Assembly: GCF_002113885.1 (NCBI RefSeq)
Contig: NW_018408898.1
Coordinates: forward strand, 167,290-231,289
Source of the DNA: Mizuhopecten yessoensis
Taxonomy: Eukaryota
Length of the DNA stretch: 64,000 nucleotides
Direction: 5' to 3'
Below are positions 21,086 through 59,800 of this stretch, piece after piece (position 1 is the first letter of the stretch; each line of letters opens with the position of its first letter). The notes under the pieces were generated by a model, which was not told the origin of the DNA, ran no database searches, and worked only from the letters and a program-made list of their open reading frames with translations. Made by a program: the position numbers and the translations under genes.

Positions 21086-22017
21086 TAGTATGCAGAGATA
21101 AGCACACTCTTTTCAAAATTAAATTTCTAGCATTTACATCAGCTCTATGAGCATAGGAACATCAATACATGTTCAAGCATGTTTTGAAGTTTCACGCGTA
21201 TTAACCGTTTTATGAATAAATTAACTCATGTTTGGTCATTCCTGTGATAGATGAAGACGAGTACGGTACTAAATTATAAAATAACGCCTCTTCTGTCTAT
21301 GGATAAGCAGCAAGAGACGCTATCAATGTCAGTCAAAAGGTCTAAGGCCTGACAGTCTTTTTTAAAATTATAAAATTCATCCGACATAATAATGGGACAA
21401 TGGAGAAGAACATCAATAATTACTTGCATTGATTTGAAAGATATAAAAACAGATTCTATCTATCATTTTTCATTTCTATGGCGATTGATCCAGATCGTGA
21501 ATTGCATATGGATATGTATTTGAGACCTTCGGGACACTGCACATTTGTATCTGTGGTTAAATTGACAGCCTGTTAGACAAAACAAGCAATACCAATTAAT
21601 CCGTGGTTTCTTTTACGGGGATAGCGCAATGAGGCAGGTCATGTTCTGTCTTAATACCTAGATTTAGAAAACAGAAAGCGTTGTTATGAAAAAAAAAAAG
21701 GTAAATCTACATGAACATCTGGACTAAAGGTGGGAGAACTAAGCCAACAAAACAGCGACATGGTCATTAATTTCAATAATGTGTACATTATTACCACGCC
21801 ATTGTTCTCAGGTTCTCATTTCCCATTCTCTGTTTAGCAGTGACCTCATGTCAACATCCACAACTACACTGACCCACTAAGCACAAAGCTATAGCAGACA
21901 CATCTTTATAAAAACAAACACCAGATACAGTATGACACGGGTTGGTTTACTAATCCAACAATGTCTCATTTTTTTTTTTATCTTGTAACGATTCTCTTTC
22001 AACTACATGTAACTAGT

Positions 22018-22165
22018 TTTAACGAGAACATCAACGGGTTATAACGAGATAACTAAAGCGTTTCAACGAGATAAAATTATCGCTTTAACCAGATAACTAA
22101 CGCGTCTTAACGAGATAAAATTCTCGCTTTAACCAGATAACTAACGCGTCTTAACGAGATAAATA
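22018..22165. repeat. 22-bp-period tandem repeat (AACGAGATAA core)
   Basis: aacgagataa/aaccagataa recurs about every 22 bp. Confidence 0.8.
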
Positions 22166-23850
22166 TTCTTATATTACCTTTCAAATTGATCATAACATTT
22201 TTTTGTACATTTACAATAGACATTAAAAGTATAAACACAGATCTGTGTCCTCCTATTTAGATTTATACAATCAAAATATGTAGCCTGGTTGTGGATGTTT
22301 TGGTTGGCTTTTGTAGACCTCGCACGCTAGTGAGGATAGTGATAATATATATCATACATGTATATCCAATCTTTTTTTGTCGCACAGTCTCCATAAGCTA
22401 ATGCTGGGTGATTCCATAAATCTTTTTAGTATGCCAAATTTAAAATCAAACATAGTTTGTCACTTAAAGTTTTAGGAACTATCCGTTATTTGAATTATTA
22501 TGTACAATTTACAGCTCATCGATAAGACGGAAACTGTCAAGTTTCTTTTCATGCCATCCGCGTCCAGACGGTTGGTTGTTAACCGATTTTGACGAATGTT
22601 CCACATTAAGTTTTGTGAGGAGGATTCCAACACTGGACAAAAAGAGGAAAAATATTGGAAAAATCTCGTAGTATACGTGCGGGAAGTATATGGTAAGAGA
22701 AATCTCTGATACTTTTTCTTTTCAAATCCCTTTCTTCAGTCAGGTCAGGTTGCTTCCGTATTAGGCCAATCATATTTAGATAACCCTCGCTGATAACGCT
22801 TCCATGTATTAGTCCCATTTATGGAGCTTATGAAATATACTTCAAGTCATACTTGTTGGTCAAATGATTTCAAGTCGTTTATCAAATTCGTGTAGTCATC
22901 AATATTACTTGCCTTTTTAAAAAGTTATTGCTCATTTAAATAGCAGCACTAGTTTTATAGTACCTTACCTGATATTACGAGTAGACCTGTGTAAATGTTG
23001 TCTCCGAGAGTTAATTGGAATTAAACAAAAAAACTCAATTACACCAGTCCCTGCATTTTTTCTATGGACTGTGACCGCACTGTATATAAACAAGCCTGTT
23101 GCCAGTGTAAGCTAATACCAGATGTGGTGATTTTAAAATGTAACCCCGTGCAGTAGTCTTAACTCGAGCAGACTCCTTTGATCAGTATGTTGAGACTATG
23201 AGAATACATTAAGATATATAACGAGATTTTTATTTTGCTTGATATTCAATATACAGAAAATCTTTAGACCTACAGTTAATTACTAATGCCATTGGTCTCA
23301 CAATAATACAAAAACACGAATTTTAGAAATGTTTCAATGATTCAAGAAAACGTAATTAAAACGCCTGTGAAGCCAGGAACGTGTTATTATTTAATATGCT
23401 AGTTGAATTTGTGTAGATGTACTATACAGATGCATTCGAACTATTCTTTTGTTTTTTCTCGTTACAGCTGGCAGACGAGGAGATGTCACACTACACCTAA
23501 GACTATGAAGTTTGTGACAGGGGCTGAGGACGGACCCGTTTTAGGATTCAGTATACTGCCGTCTATCGCTTTCGGTGATGGAACTCTACCATGGCATTCA
23601 TGAATGAGTATTTTGGATATGAGTAATGTCAATGCTCATTTAATTCTTACTCGAAAATTATCTATGGATTGAATTGATGAGCGATTTTGTTGTGGATTTT
23701 CACATTCTCTGAGTATCTAGGAAGTTAAAATAATGACCAGGAAAGGATTTTTCAAATTCACGCACGTTCTTCAAATTCTTATTCATTTTGAATACCTTCA
23801 CGTAGTAATAAGGAATTATAAGATCATAATTTTCGCTTTGAGCGTCCGTC

Positions 23851-38862: not shown

Positions 38863-41800
38863 GTAATTACTTGATGAAACAGGTTTCGATATTAATAACA
38901 ATCCAGGATGTACATTATTTGGGACAGGGGCAATTTATATCAGTCAGCATCCTCAAAATCCAAGGCTTGCATTTGCAATTAATGCACATACATGTATCAT
39001 CTCTGCCTCCTTGGAAAATGACATAACAAAATCAAAGGCGTTCTGAAAGCTATTTGATTGGTTTCAGGTAACAAGCTGACCAATTGCTAGCTAGGCTGAT
39101 ACCTGTAGGTAACAAACTGACCAATTGCTAGCTAGGCTGATACCTGTCATGTGAAGGTAAAGGATCCCAGAGGAGCTACAGCCAACTTCAGAGCCTGTCA
39201 AGTTAACTGTTACACGGCTGCTGATCCCTTTGTTCTTCATCAAAGACATCAGATCAAGTCAGCTTTTATTATCCTCACATAGAGCCTTTAATTTTGTGGT
39301 GAAATATTTGAAGGATGTAGAGAAGATAATGTATATTGAAAGCAAAACCTTCAGAGTTTGAATGATCAATTGGGGCTGTTTCTAGAATTTCTCTGTTATG
39401 TATGTGTACAGTATTACCTATCGGTCATTTTCATTAATATTAACTTGTGTATTCAATATATTAGAAAATTCACTATGACAGACAGGAAGTTGAACAGGAA
39501 AACTAGAGGTGGGCAGTGTGTTTATTTACGCTAAATTGAGCTGACATGGCCAAAAATGTCATCTGGCAAACAATATTTTGGAATGATATTTTAAAAACTC
39601 TCTTGATTTCCTGAATATTTTTTTCTTAAAATCCACAAGGTGTAGAGTCATGGTAATGTTTTAATGGTAAAATGCTTGGGTTAAGACTATACCAAGTTTC
39701 ATCAGATAAATGATCACCACAACCAATTTTCAAGGTAAAGAGTCAAATATGTTAAAAATATCAAAGGACTTCTTTTGGTGAACTACGAGACTAAGATTCA
39801 ATATATTTGGTATTTGCTTATTTGTTGAAGACAGTGGTACCATTGCTATTCCCTTGAGATAAAAGCCAATCAATTTTCTTGCCTCCAGTAAATTTGTGTC
39901 ATTCACAAGATGGTGTGTATAGAGGGACTTTGATTCTATCACGAGAAAGTCCATGGATGCAGAAAAAAAAATGTATATCTTAGCGAACAACGACTGAAGT
40001 CATGACTATAGTAAAAAAAAAGGTGTAGCTTTTAACATATTTTAGTTGAATATTTTTAATACACTTTTACTTCCTGGCCTTTAATGATCACTTAGAGACA
40101 TTTGTTTCAGGTAGACCTGTTTTTGAGCTGTGGAAACCTAGCCTCTCGGTCAAGTGTCCTCAAAAAGTTCTCTCTGTAAAAAGATCCAAGAGAAAACACT
40201 GTGCACCTTTAGTCAAACATTTGAGTATGGAAACCGATTCCACTCAAACACTCAAATCCTGCATTGCAAAGGACTTGGAGGATCTGAAAGCCAAGGCAAA
40301 GACCTATGCCAGGGATCAAGGGTTCCCAAAAGATTTTCCCCGAAGAAAGAAGCAGAATCACCAGAAAAATGAGGCCATGGATTCAACCAGTGATGTAAAA
40401 GATAGAGAGGAGAAATGTTTGGAGGAGAATAAAATAGAACGGGGAGCAAATGCTACAAGTCAAGTGTTCAAACAAGATGATTTTGATATGAAGCAGGAGG
40501 GTTATGGAAATTGGGATGGTGATTTTGATGGAAAGCAGGTGGTTGATTTTGATGTCAATGAAGAAGATGATGGAAACCAGGAGGAAGATTTTAATGAAAA
40601 CAAAGAGTGTGATAATGAAAGATGGCTCAGGCCTAAAGTCAGCAAGAAAGATAAAAGAAAAAGACAACGGCAGCAGAGTAGGGAAAAAAAGGCTTATGCT
40701 TGGATGCAGAAGATTCAAAGTGGAGAACAGGAAGCTGGTGGCAGTCAGGGTCAAATAAGGAATTCATTTGGCGGCTCAAAAAAAGAACGGCGGAAGATGC
40801 AGAGGTTTGAAAGGAGACTGGCAAAAAGTACCGGTTTGGCGGAGGATTATGCTACACGTTGGGGTATCAGTGACAGCAGCTACAGTCAGCAGGACAATGA
40901 GGGCCAACATGACGGTGAAGCTTCTAGTTCTAGATGGAAGAGGCAGAAACAAACAGCAACAAACGAAGAATATAAAACTTCATCCAGTTTACCCACTGTC
41001 CAGCCATCATTTGAAGGAAGGCCTCGGTGGAGACACCCTTACACTGCAGAACCGTCACAACAGTTTGCTTCATCTAGGCCTCAATCGCATCAGTTTAGTT
41101 CGTCTAGGTTTCAGTGGAGAAATCCTAATGCTTCAGAACCATCACAACAGTTTGGTTCCCCTAGGCCTCAATTGGGAAATCCAAATGCTTCAGAACCACC
41201 CCAACAGTTTCACTCATCTGGGCCTCAATGGAGAAATCCAAATGCTTCAGAACCACCCCAACAGTTTCACTCGCCTAGGCCTCAATGGAGAAATCCAAAT
41301 GCTTCAGAACCACCCCAACAGTTTGGTTCATCAAAGTCTCAGGTTTCATTTGAAGGAGTATCTCACTGGAGACAACCTACCACATTAGAATCATCACAGC
41401 AAAGAGATCATACTAGAGGTAAATTTTATAAACAAATTACTGTATAATTGGATTTTTTTTGTCACAATTTAACTTTGCCTTTCTTGTTTTTTATAATGGG
41501 GTGAATTAATTCTGACAGCAGTTATAAGTATACATACAGATGTACATACACAGTTGTCCTGTATAGCAATCTACTAAAGTTCATGTGAAGGGCTTAACAA
41601 TTAACATGGGACAAATATGGATTTTACAGGTGATGGGTAGAAACAACAGAATCTTTCCTTACTGTGAGGTTGTGCAGAGAAATTTCTAACACAGGGGGGG
41701 GGGGGGGAGAATTTTTAATATTGTTACTTTCCCATTTTTTGTAACAGATATACGAACATGTGAAGATATTACTTTTAGTATCGACCAATCAGAACAGTTC

Positions 41801-44800: not shown

Positions 44801-47800
44801 AAAAAAATTGTGTATGCCCATATTTTCTAATCAAGTCAATTATTTTTAATTATGGAAATGTTCGTTTATATATATATATGTATAAGCCTTCATATAGTTA
44901 ATACAGGCTATAAAAAACTCCAGAAAATTGGAAGAGAACTTTGATAATCTTATAAACTTATATGTGTGTAAAAATGAGTCACATGTTGTTAATTATTTTC
45001 CAGGAGTTGTTCCTACCTGAGACAATTAAACTACAGTTGTAGTGGACGATACCAACAGTGTAAAATGGGAATACAGGGAAAAGGAGTGATAATTGCAGCA
45101 AGAGAGAGGATAAGGAAACAGTCTTACGGTATTCATAGTGTTTGTTGATTTATCAAGAATAGAGGCCAATTGGTGTATACAGTTAATGTGCAGCATTACA
45201 TGAAGTTCAGTTTACTTTAAAAATTAAATGCTTTGGGGTTGAACTTGTTCATGTATCATATTAAACACAAACAGGAGAAGTGGACGGTGCCTTACTAAAG
45301 TGCATTTGACTAGGTGATCTCTATACCTTCAGGTTTGTGAGGATGTGTATGTTTGTGTGTGTTAGAATTTGTATAGATCTTGTATAGATGTCTTGCTAGT
45401 TTTGGATTTGTATTTCCAACAGCTCATTTGCAGTACCTTACTACTTGAATAAGGTAAAATTAAAGTCAAAGTTGCTGAAAATAATTGGTGGGCATCAAAG
45501 GTTCAATTTGTAATGCTTAATGGATGAATGTTATTTGTGTAAGAGAACTTATTTAGGGGGTATTTTTTATGTCATAAAGACCTATCATATATAGTTGCAA
45601 GCTGGCCTTAGTTCTGGAGTTTTGGTGACTATGTTATCACAGGAAAACAGGGGCCTATCTGGATGAATCAAAGAAAAGTAGGAAAAAGATGCTCACAGAA
45701 AGTTTCTACCAAAAGGATCCTGAGTCAACACCTTGGAATAAATGAGGTACATAGCGTACGTATATCTCATCCAGTGTTATCAATAGATTTTATTATTATA
45801 AATGATTTAAAAAAATCATGATACTTGAGCTGCTGCCCAATTTATGCAACTAGGCAGTGTTATTATTAAGTAGTACTGTTTGGAAACAATGGCCACAATT
45901 CCCTGCAAGGATTCAGTATAGGATGATCACTTGTTGGAATTATGGCTATTAATAGGTAAAAGGTACCTCTTCATGTGCACAAGCTGTAATATTGAAAAAA
46001 AATCTTCAATTCATCTGGGAGTATTCTAGATTAGAGTTACTTCCCTTGGTGAGGTATTCTACAATACCTGGATAATAACATTGATTGGTAAACGGTAGTG
46101 GATACATGTAAGTCCTTGCAATTGGTTCCTTCCCAGAATTTGTTGTTTTGTTTTTCTTTAGTTTCCTGAACAGATTGATTTTAGAACAATTCTCATTCTG
46201 TGAAATGCATCACAAGATGTTTTAGATATGAAATATATTTGTTGAAATATGAATTAATAATTAATATGTTTCAATAGTGGCAATATAATCCGAATGATAT
46301 ATTTTGAATGGGATGCTGCTGTGTACCTCTATAAATGTGTATTGCCTCTGTTCCAGATATACATGTTTCTGAGACGTGTGTTTTTCCATGTTATACCAAA
46401 TGAGCTGCTTGGAAAAGCCAACAAGAAGATGCTTCACAAGTGTATCCTTAGACATCTGACATAGAACTGGGTTACTCATTGATCAACCACATTAATCAGT
46501 TAATTGTACATCTACATCAAGCATGCAGTATATTTTATACTACATGACTGTGTAGTTCAAATTTTGGAACCCAACAAGGAAAGTTACTGTTGATATAAAA
46601 CTGTTTTATAATTGATGTCAAATATTCAACCATTTTATGCCCAGCGATTTTATTGGGGGAGAGAGGGGTGCATAGTTTGTCCCATGGCTGTCCCATCTTG
46701 TCCTGTCCTGTCTATTTACCAATTCAGTAGCATCACTCTAGTGACTTCTATTGGTTAAAAGATTATTCATACAAAGGTCAAGTATAAGAAGACCTCAAAA
46801 GAGATCCTGTTCAGGGTTCTAAGGTCAAGGCTAAGGTCGTTGTTACTATTCATAGAATTTGTCAACCAATGACACTTATTTGCTGTAGAGCTGGAGCATT
46901 TATGTCTTAGGGACAATTGATCAACTGTTTGGCCCTGTGTGACATCATTCTTTTGATGCGAGGCTGACACCTTCTGTTACCCATTATTCCACCGCCATAT
47001 GCTGACATTATTTTTTGATGCGAGGCTAACACCTACATGTACTAATACCCATTATTCTGTGATGGTTCGTTACATCATACTTAACAAACCCTTCTGTACC
47101 TACTTGTACATCTTGAACTAAGCCATCTTGTTTGTCAGAGAATATGCAGATTGACAATTATAACATGTTCTTAAAAATGATATCCAAAAAGTGACTTTGC
47201 CACATATATAATTGAATTACAGATTGCTGAGGGCTAACTGAATTGACATTTATCAGAAACATTCTGATTTTACATTGTATAAAAGGAAACATATACTTTG
47301 ACATGTTTTTAGACATAAATTAGGTTTCATGTATATTTATAAAATTATCAGTAGCTGTACATTGCACCATAATGATGTAGCTGACACAGTTTTAATTTGA
47401 ATGATTTGACCTTGACATACTTCAGGTTTGAAACTGTTCCTAAAACTTGGCAAATATGACAAATTTTCCATGGCAGAGCTGAATGTGGAGAAGATGAAGG
47501 TAGGTTTTTAATATGGATGGAAAAACTTATTTCTTAGACACTAGTCAGAGAAAAATATATTTCAAGACTTTTAAATTTTATTCAGGATACATTAATTCAA
47601 TGCAGAAAAAAGAGTATAAAGGAAGAATTTTACTCCCCGAAGGGCTGAGGTTCAGATAAGGAAAGTGACCTATACGAGGCATGCTGCTATATCACTGGGC
47701 CTCTTGTTTAATATTTTAGTAAACTTGTAAAATTGTATTGATTCCACATAGTCTAAAGACATGTTTCATTCCCAGGTGGAGAGAGTTCCATGGCTGGCTG

Positions 47801-53800: not shown

Positions 53801-56800
53801 TAACAGGGCTAGAAGTTAATTATAAGAACCACTAGTGAGTGGAGCTAGTACATCGTTCCCAATTTTACTAGTTACTGTACAAGTTCCACTAACCCAATAG
53901 TATTCAACATACCAGAAAGATTTAGTAATATCAAATTTTGATTTGTCAGTATAATTGGGTTAGCAGTTTTTAAAACCACATAGTTCATCTTGAGATTTCA
54001 CCTGTTTCAGATTTGTGAATTGCCCTTATTGTCTGGCCCAGCTGGTTAGGTAGTACATTTCATGATACCTTTATTGATTCTGTCTTTCACACATATAAAT
54101 TAAAGTAGAGTGTCACTAATGCAATCAGTAACTCAGGATCATTCTTTTCGCAGTATTTATTTTAGTTTTTAAGAGATTATAACAACAGTCATTATTATTC
54201 AATCCATATTTTTAATGTGGTTCTTGTGGAAACTTAATAGTGTATCATATTTGGTAGTAAATGGCAGTACCTTGAATGTGTTAGCTGTATGTGAGGGGGT
54301 TTGTATTGAATGTGTTAGTGTATGTGAGGGGGTTTGTATTGAATGTGTTAGTGTATGTGAGGGGGTTTGTATTGAATGTGTTAGTGTATGTGAGGGGGTT
54401 TGTATTGAATGTGTTAGTGTATGTGAGGGGGTTTGTATTGAATGTGTTAGTGTATGTGAGGGGGTTTGTATTGAATGTGTTAGTGTATGTGAGGGGGTTT
54501 GTATTGAATGTGTTAGTGTATGTGAGGGGGTTTGTATTGAATGTGTTAGTGTATGTGAGGGGGTTTGTATTGAATGTGTTAGTGTATGTGAGGGGGTTTG
54601 TATTGAATGTGTTAGTGTATGTGAGGGGGTTTGTATTGAATGTGTTAGTGTATGTGAGGGGGTTTGTATTGAATGTGTTAGTGTATGTGAGGGGGTTTGT
54701 ATTGAATGTGTTAGTGTATGTGAGGGGGTTTGTATTGAATGTGTTAGTGTATGTGAGGGGGTTTGTATTGAATGTGTTAGTGTATGTGAGGGGGTTTGTA
54801 TTGAATGTGTTAGTGTATGTGAGGGGGTTTGTATTGAATGTGTTAGTGTATGTGAGGGGGTTTGTATTGAATGTGTTAGTGTATGTGAGGGGGTTTGTAT
54901 TGAATGTGTTAGTGTATGTGAGGGGGTTTGTATTGAATGTGTTAGTGTATGTGAGGGGGTTTGTATTGAATGTGTTAGTGTATGTGAGGGGGTTTGTATT
55001 GAATGTGTTAGTGTATGTGAGGGGGTTTGTATTGAATGTGTTAGTGTATGTGAGGGGGTTTGTATTGAATGTGTTAGTGTATGTGAGGGGGTTTGTATTG
55101 AATGTGTTAGTGTATGTGAGGGGGTTTGTATTGAATGTGTTAGTGTATGTGAGTGGGTTTGTATTAAATGGGTTAGTGTATGTGAGGGGGTTTGTATTGA
55201 TTTCAATGTTTTGGTTGTAGGTGGTAACCCAGTCTGAGAGCTCTGTTCACCTGTTACAGCAGCTGAAATCTCATTTGTCCAACAATCTTGTCAAGGTAAT
55301 GTTTCCAACTGGATTTCTATGTAAGGAAATAAGTTTTCATATCAAATTAACTTTTGCACTGGTCATACAAATGGAGATCAGTAAAATCTCTAGACCTTTT
55401 GACCTTCAATATGCTTTAATCACAACCTTTTGATCTTCAATATGTTTTAACCGACAAGCTTTTGATCTTCAATGTTTTAATCTACAACCTTTTGATCTTC
55501 AATATGTTTTAATTTATAACCTTTTTGACAGTACGTAATTTTGTTGGAAGTAAAATGAAGATTGGATGTATTTTCACTTATATTTTCCGATGGGAACATT
55601 ATTCACAGAAAGATAACTGTTTACATCAGTTACTTGTTTATGATTTATTTATGGAATTTTCTGTCAGACTAAAAAATGTATAATATACAATTTTCTTTTT
55701 AATTCTGAGAAATACTTGTTAAATCTATGTTTCTTTCAGTGGCGACAGTAATAAGTAGTTGTTGAGAAAATATAGTGCAGGGCATTTCTTACAGTAGGGA
55801 GAATTTGCAAATTTTAAATTCTTATATATGTTGACTATAGTCATGCTTATGACAACTTGCACATCATGACATAATCCTGCATTAACCTCTGTCTTTGTAT
55901 TATACTTCTCACTATGAATTTAGCCGTGTATACTGGATTTGTCTGCCTATCCGTAGAAAAATATTGTTTGGACAATTCCTTCTAAACACCAAATCAGTTT
56001 TGGTTCGTTCTGTAGATAAACTTTGGGATAGTCATCATTTTAACCATGTTATATTTACAGTCCCACAAATCTTGGATTACAGGACTAAATAAGTTAAAAA
56101 ACTGGTTTCTATCTGACAGCTTTTGTGATTGTTAAGGACACAATGACTTAATCTTTTGTGCATGCACTATGGGGCTTACAGTTCTAGGTTATAGGTTAGG
56201 TTTCTTAAATAGCCGGTATCCAATGAAACTGCTCTATTAATATTGTACGAGAAACTAGTAATATTGGACTGTTACATTCATAGAGCATAGGTGTATAGAG
56301 TCTTAAGTTGTACATTTGTGTCAACAGGTAGGAAAAAGGTATTATCTCCAGGCATCAGGAATCAGCCAGGGTTCTGTTCTGTCTACCATCCTTTGTAACA
56401 TGTACTATGGACACATGGAAAAGGAGTTGTTTCCCCTGTTGGAGGGAGAAGAGCTTCTGATGAGAATCGTTGATGATTCACTGTTTGTAACACCACACAA
56501 GAATCGGGCTGTGGACTTCCTCAATCTCATGTTTAAAGGTCAATATCTTTCCTTCTATACCTACATGTATATGTTATCTAAAAATGTTTAGATCTGCAAT
56601 ATCCTCCAAATAGTAATTTTGTATTGTTAAAAGGGATAGAGCAGTTTAAAGGCTGCTTCAATCATATAATATTTTTTGAAAATATGAATAGCTGAAGTCA
56701 TAAGATAAGACTGTCAGGTGTGACATTGTTTATACAACTACATTTGTACATGTACTACAGGTAGCTGCAGGGAATCAGACATACTGAGTGATGAATGTGG

Positions 56801-59800
56801 TCAGCACAACAGTCACCATAATTAACAGTCACCATAACAGCCATTTTATAAAATTATAACGACTGCTGCAGTTTGTGACATCACACAACAGCTTCAGAGT
56901 CAGTTGAGTGATAATCTGAAGAAATGTAAATAATATTTTTATTTCCAGGAATACCAGATTACAATCTCCGTGTAAACACTGACAAAGTTCTGCTTAACTT
57001 TCCTCTGTCGCTGGATGACAGAGTTACCTTTCCTGTGACTCAAACAGGTAAGGATTTCACCCTGAACTGATCATTATATGATGCAAGCATTTTTGTGATT
57101 GAACTTTTAATTAATAAAAAGTAAAGAAATAATAATCAATAATAACTAACTCTTTCCTCACTTGAACTTGATATTCTGGACAGTGTTTTTGTCTGGTTGA
57201 TACTTGGCAAGGTTTTAGTGACATCTCCTTCCCCTTTACTTTGTATACTGGACAACGTTTGAGAGTCACTCTTCCGACTGGTTAAATGATATAAGAGGCA
57301 CATTTTCAATACACTTTTTCTCATAACCTTGAATACTAGAGGCACTGTTTGAAACACTCTTCGTAATCACCTAGCTCATGTAGCTTTTACACTTTACAAA
57401 ATATCTTGTTATACCCCCCGCAACGAAGTTAGGGGGTATACTTGAATCAGGTCGTCCGTCCGTCCGTCTGTGGATGCAATGTAGTACCATGTACTCCTCC
57501 TAAACTACTGGATGGATTTCAATGATAAGAATCCTTGCAGCTTCATTGAAGATGTGCGTAAAGTACTTTGAATTGGGCTATTTCCTCTTTTCACGAAGTT
57601 ATGGCCCTTTGTTCAATAAAAGCTTTTTTAGACCATGACATTGCACAGAAAATGCAAGAACCTTTTTATTTTTTATTCAATTCCTTCCAAATTTGGTATG
57701 GTAATACTAGAAGCAATAATATTTAACATACATGTATGTAACGTTTTTTTTGTGTTCAGGTTTCAACTTTCCGCGTTTTTGAAAGGTCAAAGGTCATGAA
57801 TGAATTACATTACTGAAATGGCTAAATATCTCGGAAACGGAGGGTATTTTGTATACACATTCTGAGGTCGTGAGGTCAGAGGTCAAATGTCACGAATGAA
57901 TTACATTACCAAAATGGCTAAATATCTTGGAAATAGTAGGTATTTGGTATACAAAGAGTATCGTAGCCAATTATGCAGGCTATATTATGACAAACTTCCA
58001 AGGTCATGAGGTCAAAGGTTAAAGGTCATAGATGCATTTTATTACTGAAATGTCTAATTATGGCAGAAACGGTAGGTATTTTGTATACACATACCTTGGA
58101 GTAAATGTAGCATTGATGCAAGCTACATTGTGACAAAATTCCAACATCATTGAGTCAAAGGTCACAGTAGTGGTGTTTGCCTTTTCCATCGGTCTGTCGA
58201 TACAACCTCTGAGGTTAGACTTTTTCATGACCCTTGATCTTTCTATATATTTTTTCCGTTGTATATTAAGCTCCTACAGGGGCAACAAACACCTGGAATG
58301 CGGGGGGGGGGGGTATTAGTTAGCCCATAGGCGACAGTTCTAGTTTTTGACTGATGATAATATTAGGTGGTGCAGTGGAAAGCACATTTGCCTTTCACCA
58401 AGGCAGTGAATCATTCCCCAATCCGACTTGGAAGGTAAAGGGTCACCTGGCCGACCACATGGGTTTTCTCTCACTGGATTTTCTCCAAAATTATACCCCC
58501 AGCACCCTTACATCCACGCCAGCAAGATTGATTAATATAAGTTGAAATAACTTGTTTCATAATTTTTGTAAAATAGATAAAGTTAAATTTATATAAAATG
58601 CTGAATATATCCTTAATGGAAAGAACATTAAATTATAAGCAAGACCATGGAAAACACGTCGATCTTCAGTAAAAATATTTAGAATTTGATATTAAAAGAC
58701 ATCATTCTGAATATAAATCTGTGGAGTCCTATTTTATATATGAAAAATAGTTGACAAAGTTCATTCCTAGATTGTAAATTTATTCCATTAAGAAAAAATA
58801 CAGAGCTATGAAATATTGCAATGCCAATAAGCTTAAAGTAACATGGTTGTAGATTGGTTTCCCTGGTGTGGGATGCTGTTTAATACTAAGACTCTCCAGG
58901 CCAGTATGGACTTCTCCAGATATGCTGGCATATGTGAGTCTTTTTTGTTTAATGAACCATGGCCATTGAAATGTAGATATCTCTCAAACTGCTTTTTGTT
59001 AACTGTTTTATTTCATATCCAAATGTATAAAACTAAATCTAAATGCTTTCAAAAGATTGTTATTCAAAATCTGACACCTGTTTCTATCAGTACATTTGGG
59101 TTTAATTGTGGTCAAATAGACCTCACAGCCAACAGGCACTTATAAATTTAGAGGTATATAGAGTATTTGACAGTCTTTAAAACACACATCTACTGTATTT
59201 AGGCATGCATACCTAGGTTTCAATCCCAGTATCAGGGGATTACAAAAATAGGATGAGTCTTTAGATAGTTATACAAGTACTACTGAACTTTAAATGAAAA
59301 CAATGGATAAAAACTTTCACCAGTTTAAAAATAGAAATGTTCATGATCTTGAAATATAAATATTCACAATATATATATCCCATATATAATAGAGCTGTCA
59401 TTTGAGAGAAGAAACGTCAGGAGAATATATTACTCTCCACAATGAGTATTTTGTTTGACCTATATGTGAACATTTTTAATTTGTAAAACACGTGATACCA
59501 CATAGACAACCAGGAATTTGATGTTGCAATAAAAATAATAATGAAGTGTGTTTTTAAAAATATATGTTAAATGTAATTTTTTATTCCTGGCCCATGTAGG
59601 TGTTGCTGATACAATGAGTTTTGACCTTTCTCGTGATCCACTGATGACCTTGAAACACAAGCTCCTGAAGTATGTGTCCGTTTGACCTATGGCTCCAGCA
59701 ATGAAAATACACAGAGAATATTATTTTTTGTAAAATACCATTATATTATATATTTCATAAGAGATGTAGGATATCAATAGTTTACAGGTATCATGCTCAA

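Follow-up and report, generated by a model that had tools for sequence, protein, structure and literature searches.

The TERT gene carried by the window, by which we mean the whole 64,000-nt stretch of scallop DNA analysed here, very probably contains a genuine U12-type intron (GT-AG subtype) of bilaterian age. In our reading of the sequences, the weight of the case lies in two minor-class motifs that stand exactly at a junction fixed by homology, together with the conservation of both.

The host gene and the intron junction

All profile and homology searches were run exon by exon, with no joined coding sequence used as a query. Matches to scallop TERTs obtained with tblastn are ordered, open and on the plus strand, and they start at ~35.7 kb in the TEN domain and continue to the C-terminal extension at 63.6 kb. 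When a 70-residue exon (56328-56537) was compared with 1.84 billion representatives, TERTs were the best hits, and the named TERTs among them came from Ylistrum balloti (83% identity), Pecten maximus, Argopecten irradians, Saccostrea, Mytilus, Mya, Lingula, and Sepia; the host is accordingly a pectinid bivalve. Single exons matched the Pfam profiles Telomerase_RBD (30.9 bits against a cut-off of 25, with further exons at 18.7 and 14.7) and TERT_C (33.3 bits against a cut-off of 27), and RVT_1 reached 19.7, which is under its own cut-off. Telomerase_RBD, the reverse-transcriptase motifs, and the TERT C-terminal extension follow one another in order on one strand. The exon immediately upstream of the intron (46357-46441) matches Telomerase_RBD positions 2-28 of 133 (E 0.035), and exons further 3' match positions 77-130, so that the intron lies within the RNA-binding domain of TERT, where an earlier note on this DNA had placed it.

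Two other stretches of the gene are repetitive. A very long open TERT linker exon at 40111-41418 contains repeated Trp/Arg/Pro/Gln-rich units, and linker exons of comparable length occur in the 1704-aa TERT model of Mytilus (L010:18416-19429 and 21823-23307). At 54173-55234, a unit of 33 bp (11 codons) is repeated in a long tandem array that reads open in two frames and stops ~1 bp before the TERT exon starting at 55221.

The features at and around the junction are listed here by window position:

46357-46441, plus strand: TERT exon 5' of the intron, 85 nt; acceptor ...gttccag/ATATAC; encodes IYMFLRRVFFHVIPNELLGKANKKMLHK plus T
46440-46441, plus strand: GT, a possible weak cryptic U2-type donor (CAA/GTGTAT), 2 bases 5' of the U12 donor
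46442-47425, plus strand: intron of very probable U12-type (GT-AG subtype), 984 nt, phase 1, assigned from the junction as read and from orthologous U12-type introns
46442-46450, plus strand: 5' splice site GTATCCTTA, 8/8 to the minor-class RTATCCTT consensus
46462-46464, plus strand: in-frame TAG reached on intron retention; the frame-0 open stretch 46261-46461 stops there
47409-47416, plus strand: branch-site box ACCTTGAC, 7/8 to TCCTTRAC
47423-47425, plus strand: 3' splice site CAG, the only AG in frame with the downstream open stretch
47426-47499, plus strand: TERT exon 3' of the intron, 74 nt; GT completes a Cys codon, followed by LKLFLKLGKYDKFSMAELNVEKMK

The upstream exon begins in phase 0 and closes with one base of the split codon, its last bases being ...CTTCACAAGT (...CACAAGT) at 46441. 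The intron opens with GTATCCTTAG at 46442 and ends with GACCTTGACATACTTCAG, its tail ...TTTGACCTTGACATACTTCAG reaching 47425 and the next exon opening with GTTTGAAA at 47426; the termini are therefore GT (46442-46443) and AG (47424-47425). The split codon is TGT, composed of T 46441 and GT 47426-47427, which makes the intron phase 1, and the downstream exon is followed by a U2-type donor (AAG/GTAGGT). We enumerated the GT-AG, GC-AG, and AT-AC pairs that would join both open stretches in frame. There are two frame-keeping GT-AG pairs, and only 46441/47426 leaves the conserved residues intact; the second was ruled out because 22 conserved residues would go. Several AT-AC alternatives near the junction are also in frame, and they were rejected because none has an ATATCC donor. 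Between the peptides of the two flanking exons, the annotated TERTs of Ylistrum, Pecten, and Argopecten have exactly 1 residue, that of the split codon, and exon 46357-46441 aligns to all three proteins without gaps. Direct reading of the coordinates thus gave the same two ends and the same phase that the earlier note had reported. The note had also numbered this intron 13, and its orthologue is indeed the 13th in the annotated Argopecten model; the exons that precede this intron in the window fit the number, although the numbering within the window was only partly rebuilt.

The junction or the gene would be unreal if the exon pair were mis-modelled or the locus were a TERT pseudogene, and this has to be considered given that the gene was followed exon by exon and that its last exon lies beyond the window. 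From the TEN domain through to the C-terminal extension, the TERT exons are nevertheless ordered, open, on one strand, and bounded by plausible splice sites, the lengths of the flanking exons (85 nt and 74 nt) are identical in two other scallops, Ylistrum and Argopecten, and no other frame-keeping junction spares the conserved residues. We regard an unreal junction or gene as highly unlikely.

Minor-class signals and the snRNAs that would recognise them

The donor of the intron satisfies [AG]TATCCTT at positions +1 to +8 (GTATCCTT at 46442-46449), and it has an A at +9, where T is preferred. The branch-site box has two mismatched bases on its 5' side and includes CCTTGAC at 47410-47416, the presumed branch A being 47415, 10 nt ahead of the intron's final base. 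An RTATCCTT-type donor and a branch A about 10 nt from the 3' end are what the earlier note had described. It had also claimed that there is no pyrimidine tract, and this is only weakly true. The longest pyrimidine run near the acceptor is 4, against a median of 6 in 196 U2-type TERT introns of relatives, and the pyrimidine fraction at -25 to -4 is 0.59, against 0.64 +/- 0.10 in those 196 introns, which is not clearly lower. In these AT-rich introns, the pyrimidine tract does not separate intron 46442-47425 from the U2-type ones.

The donor octamer alone is no evidence for the minor class, because RTATCCTT is not enriched in the window (4 seen against 5.7 expected). One such site, ATATCCTT at 58607 on the plus strand, was considered as a donor and rejected, as it lies inside another TERT intron, away from exon edges. 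The donor at 46442 is a very poor U1 site, as the last base of the upstream exon (-1) is T instead of G and position +5 is C. Based on the donor composition of the 196 other TERT introns in the relatives, the chance of GTATCCTT is ~1e-4 and, with a 7/8 branch box rightly placed, it falls to ~2e-6 per intron. Among those 196 introns, none starts with [AG]TATCC and only 4 have a correctly positioned box that matches at 7/8.

The scallop genome also encodes the snRNAs of the minor spliceosome. We searched the genome assembly (988 Mb in 82,659 contigs) at Rfam gathering scores and found full-length copies above those scores of U12 (two, at 109 bits each), U6atac (two, at 94 and 91 bits), U11 (one, at 96 bits), and U4atac (one, at 70 bits). 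Their recognition sequences are canonical, with GAGUAAGGAAAA in U12, AAAAAGGGC at the 5' end of U11, and AAGGAGAGA in U6atac. When these sequences are read against the established model of minor splicing, the GUAAGG of U12 (AUGCCUUAAACUAAUGAGUAAGGAAAAUAA) can pair with CCUUGAC, leaving A47415 bulged, and donor positions +4 to +8 (UCCUU) can pair both with the U11 5' end and with the AAGGAGA box of U6atac. The two U12 snRNA genes (G000:C2733:426222-426372 and 446029-446179) share a strand, are separated by 20 kb, and have near-equal scores, and the two U6atac copies sit on different contigs.

If the established biochemistry of minor splicing is applied to these sequences, removal of the intron would proceed as follows. 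The U11/U12 di-snRNP would bind both intron ends together, the U11 5' end pairing with TCCTT of the donor and U12 (GUAAGGAA) pairing with CCTTGAC so as to bulge A47415. U4atac/U6atac.U5 would join, with the AAGGAGA box of U6atac displacing U11 from the donor. A47415 would attack G46442 to give the lariat, and the exons would be ligated at 46441 and 47426, an event that would restore the TGT codon and the Telomerase_RBD frame.

Orthologous introns and their history

For comparison, we used seven annotated TERT loci, those of Ylistrum, Argopecten, Saccostrea, Mytilus, Lingula, Haliotis, and Anneissia. Introns were mapped where the codons flanking a candidate reproduce the annotated protein, which gave 26-32 resolved introns per locus and 203 in total, on exon maps that depend on automatic gene models. 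A phase-1 intron was present at the same alignment column in 7/7 relatives. In six of them, at the same codon and in the same phase, this intron has GTATCCTT and a TCCTTRAC-like branch box at -10 to -15, so that both minor-class signals were recovered when the orthologous intron was checked across molluscs, a brachiopod, and a crinoid:

Ylistrum (scallop): donor GTATCCTTT, branch box ACCCTAAC, branch A at -15
Argopecten (scallop): donor GTATCCTTA, branch box TCCTTAAC, branch A at -12
Mytilus (mussel): donor GTATCCTTC, branch box TCCTTAAT, branch A at -11
Haliotis (gastropod): donor GTATCCTTA, branch box GCCTTGAC, branch A at -12
Lingula (brachiopod): donor GTATCCTTT, branch box ACCTTGAC, branch A at -13
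Anneissia (crinoid, deuterostome): donor GTATCCTTT, branch box CACTTAAC, branch A at -10

These six orthologues range from 209 to 1165 nt in length. Their interiors cannot be aligned even among scallops and yet both ends are kept, which indicates that the ends are held by selection rather than by recent common descent. As codon, phase, and type are the same in molluscs, in Lingula, and in the crinoid Anneissia, the U12-type intron very probably predates the protostome-deuterostome split. That an ordinary U2-type intron came to resemble the minor class by chance would agree with how common RTATCCTT is in the window, with the U2-like pyrimidine content by the acceptor, and with the GT-AG termini, but it is strongly disfavoured, and to our minds extremely improbable, given the very poor U1 site, a donor found in 0/196 other TERT introns, the joint chance per intron estimated above, and the presence of both motifs at one codon in seven species whose intron interiors are unrelated. 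The U12-type identity proposed in the earlier note is thus upheld by the signals, the full set of minor snRNAs, and the conservation at the same codon across four phyla.

The exception among the relatives is the oyster Saccostrea echinata, in which the same codon is interrupted, also in phase 1, by a U2-type intron of 176 nt (L009:15981-16156) with the donor GTAATATC (GTAATA), a pyrimidine tract, and the tail TTTTCTTGTATATTTACAG. This is likely a minor-to-major (U12 to U2) conversion, a direction that we infer from the outgroups (mussel, scallops, gastropod, brachiopod, and crinoid) with one oyster sampled. Such conversion is reported in the pan-eukaryotic survey of Larue and Roy (2023), who found minor introns to be comparatively numerous in molluscs and Lingula and attributed much of the retention of minor introns to neutral processes; TERT is unmentioned there (PMC10639083). 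The oyster intron would be a case of the kind they describe, being U2-type where its relatives, at that very codon and in that phase, keep the U12 signals (PMC10639083).

Across the alignment of the seven TERTs, 34 of the 54 intron sites are common to at least two species and 11 are common to all seven. Since ten other TERT positions are likewise common to all seven, the kept position of the U12-type intron is not special, and it is the kept type that is informative. The human residues matching the intron region presumably sit in the large exon 2, and vertebrates are probably without this intron, the region being contained within that exon. Human TERT has 16 exons, of which exon 2 is unusually large, at 1.3 kb (PMC3480478, PMC5405514). 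The extent of sharing among the seven relatives (34/54 sites, 11 of them by all) suggests that the large exon 2 of vertebrates is a derived state, produced by the loss of many introns. In the comparison of animal TERT genes by Lai et al. (2017), human TERT was the only reference for intron positions, and the remaining ones were called species-specific; their account describes oyster TERT as intron-rich, with 27 introns, and makes no mention of intron type or of "U12" (PMC5405514). Our results have an intron-rich ancestral TERT in common with what has been published on metazoan TERT structure (PMC5405514, PMC3480478). They differ from those of Lai et al. in that many extra positions, the U12 site included, are common from the crinoid to the molluscs (PMC5405514), and the alignment suggests that many of the TERT introns called species-specific are ancestral.

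Set beside the U12-type GT-AG introns of animals that are catalogued in U12DB, IAOD/intronIC, and MIDB, the scallop TERT intron shares the RTATCCTT donor and a TCCTTRAC-like box 10-15 nt from the acceptor. It is also not in phase 0, its position and type are deeply conserved, and it is likewise one minor intron among ~30 major ones, in a genome with the four minor snRNAs; what differs is the host gene, TERT. Our literature search found no paper that describes a U12-type intron in TERT, and to our knowledge TERT is absent from the human minor-intron genes. Because the intron is apparently absent from vertebrates, surveys centred on the orthologues of human minor introns would miss the TERT case.

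We consider the main value of the U12-type TERT intron to be evolutionary. With it, TERT joins the genes that had a minor intron in the bilaterian ancestor. There is also a natural series at one codon, with the U12-type in scallops, mussel, abalone, brachiopod, and crinoid, the U2-type in the oyster, and probably no intron in vertebrates, and this series could be used for studying minor-to-major conversion together with intron loss.

Several other features of the relatives' TERT loci were observed. In Argopecten, an exon-like segment is present in about seven tandem copies (L008:25308-25883), two consecutive exons are duplicated ~3 kb apart (L008:28842-28901/31795-31854 and 29375-29452/32324-32401), and two junctions of the model could not be mapped. 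In Lingula, an acetyltransferase-like gene on the minus strand (L011:17148-18125) lies inside a 7.8-kb TERT intron, and copies of the last two exons are found 5' of those used (L011:24281-24845). The Ylistrum gene model is probably split, as the annotation assigns the TEN domain to a product of its own, of 276 residues (L007:1-999), directly 5' of the 1077-residue TERT model.

An inherited relic or a control point

The intron is most likely a constitutively removed, inherited relic, and any effect of its minor type on the output of TERT mRNA would come at most from the slower kinetics that minor splicing generally has. A different reading is that the U12-type intron is a putative gate, kept because it is removed slowly or conditionally, for instance depending on U6atac abundance, and thereby limits productive TERT mRNA and with it telomerase. 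If the intron were retained, translation would read K-C-I-L-R-H-L-T-stop, that is, 8 codons and then the TAG at 46462-46464, so unspliced RNA would be unproductive and give no active TERT. The minor type is found in 7/8 sampled lineages across four phyla, with both signals under selection, and this also counts for a gate. Human TERT output is influenced by intron retention and alternative splicing. There is precedent for such control in human cells, where minor introns act as switches under unstable U6atac (PMC3728624). The likeness of the scallop intron to these kinetic switches (Younis et al. 2013, PMC3728624) would hold only if the gate is real, with RNA remaining unproductive until the minor intron is removed, and that system comprises other genes in human cells.

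Against a gate, nothing in the sequence points to regulation. In the oyster the site is occupied by a U2-type intron, and vertebrates apparently have no intron there; the replacement in the oyster indicates that the minor type is dispensable for TERT function. Conservation of the position does not single out this intron either, as ten further TERT intron positions are common to all seven relatives. The survey of Larue and Roy explains the retention of minor introns largely by neutral processes and finds molluscs and Lingula generally rich in them (PMC10639083). On balance we consider a regulatory gate unlikely. More doubtful again is the broader proposal that the single minor intron of TERT is a putative conserved control point in non-vertebrate animals, which would couple telomerase to minor-spliceosome activity (U6atac level, or stress or growth signalling) and would have been lost in vertebrates, where the 5' half of the gene became exon 2, and in oysters, by conversion to the U2-type. 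If gating were nonetheless true, the intron would offer a testable way into the regulation of telomerase in bivalves, which are long-lived and grow continuously.

As for the content of the intron, an Rfam scan of the whole window found no RNA family, and hence none is hosted within the U12-type intron, whose interior has only two short direct repeats. At 46951-47057, where the intron has a small internal duplication of ~60 bp (TTTTGATGCGAGGCTRACACCT...CCCATTATTC), neither an RNA family nor an inverted repeat was found. The GT at 46440 might serve as a weak cryptic U2-type donor, and its use with the same acceptor would shift the frame.
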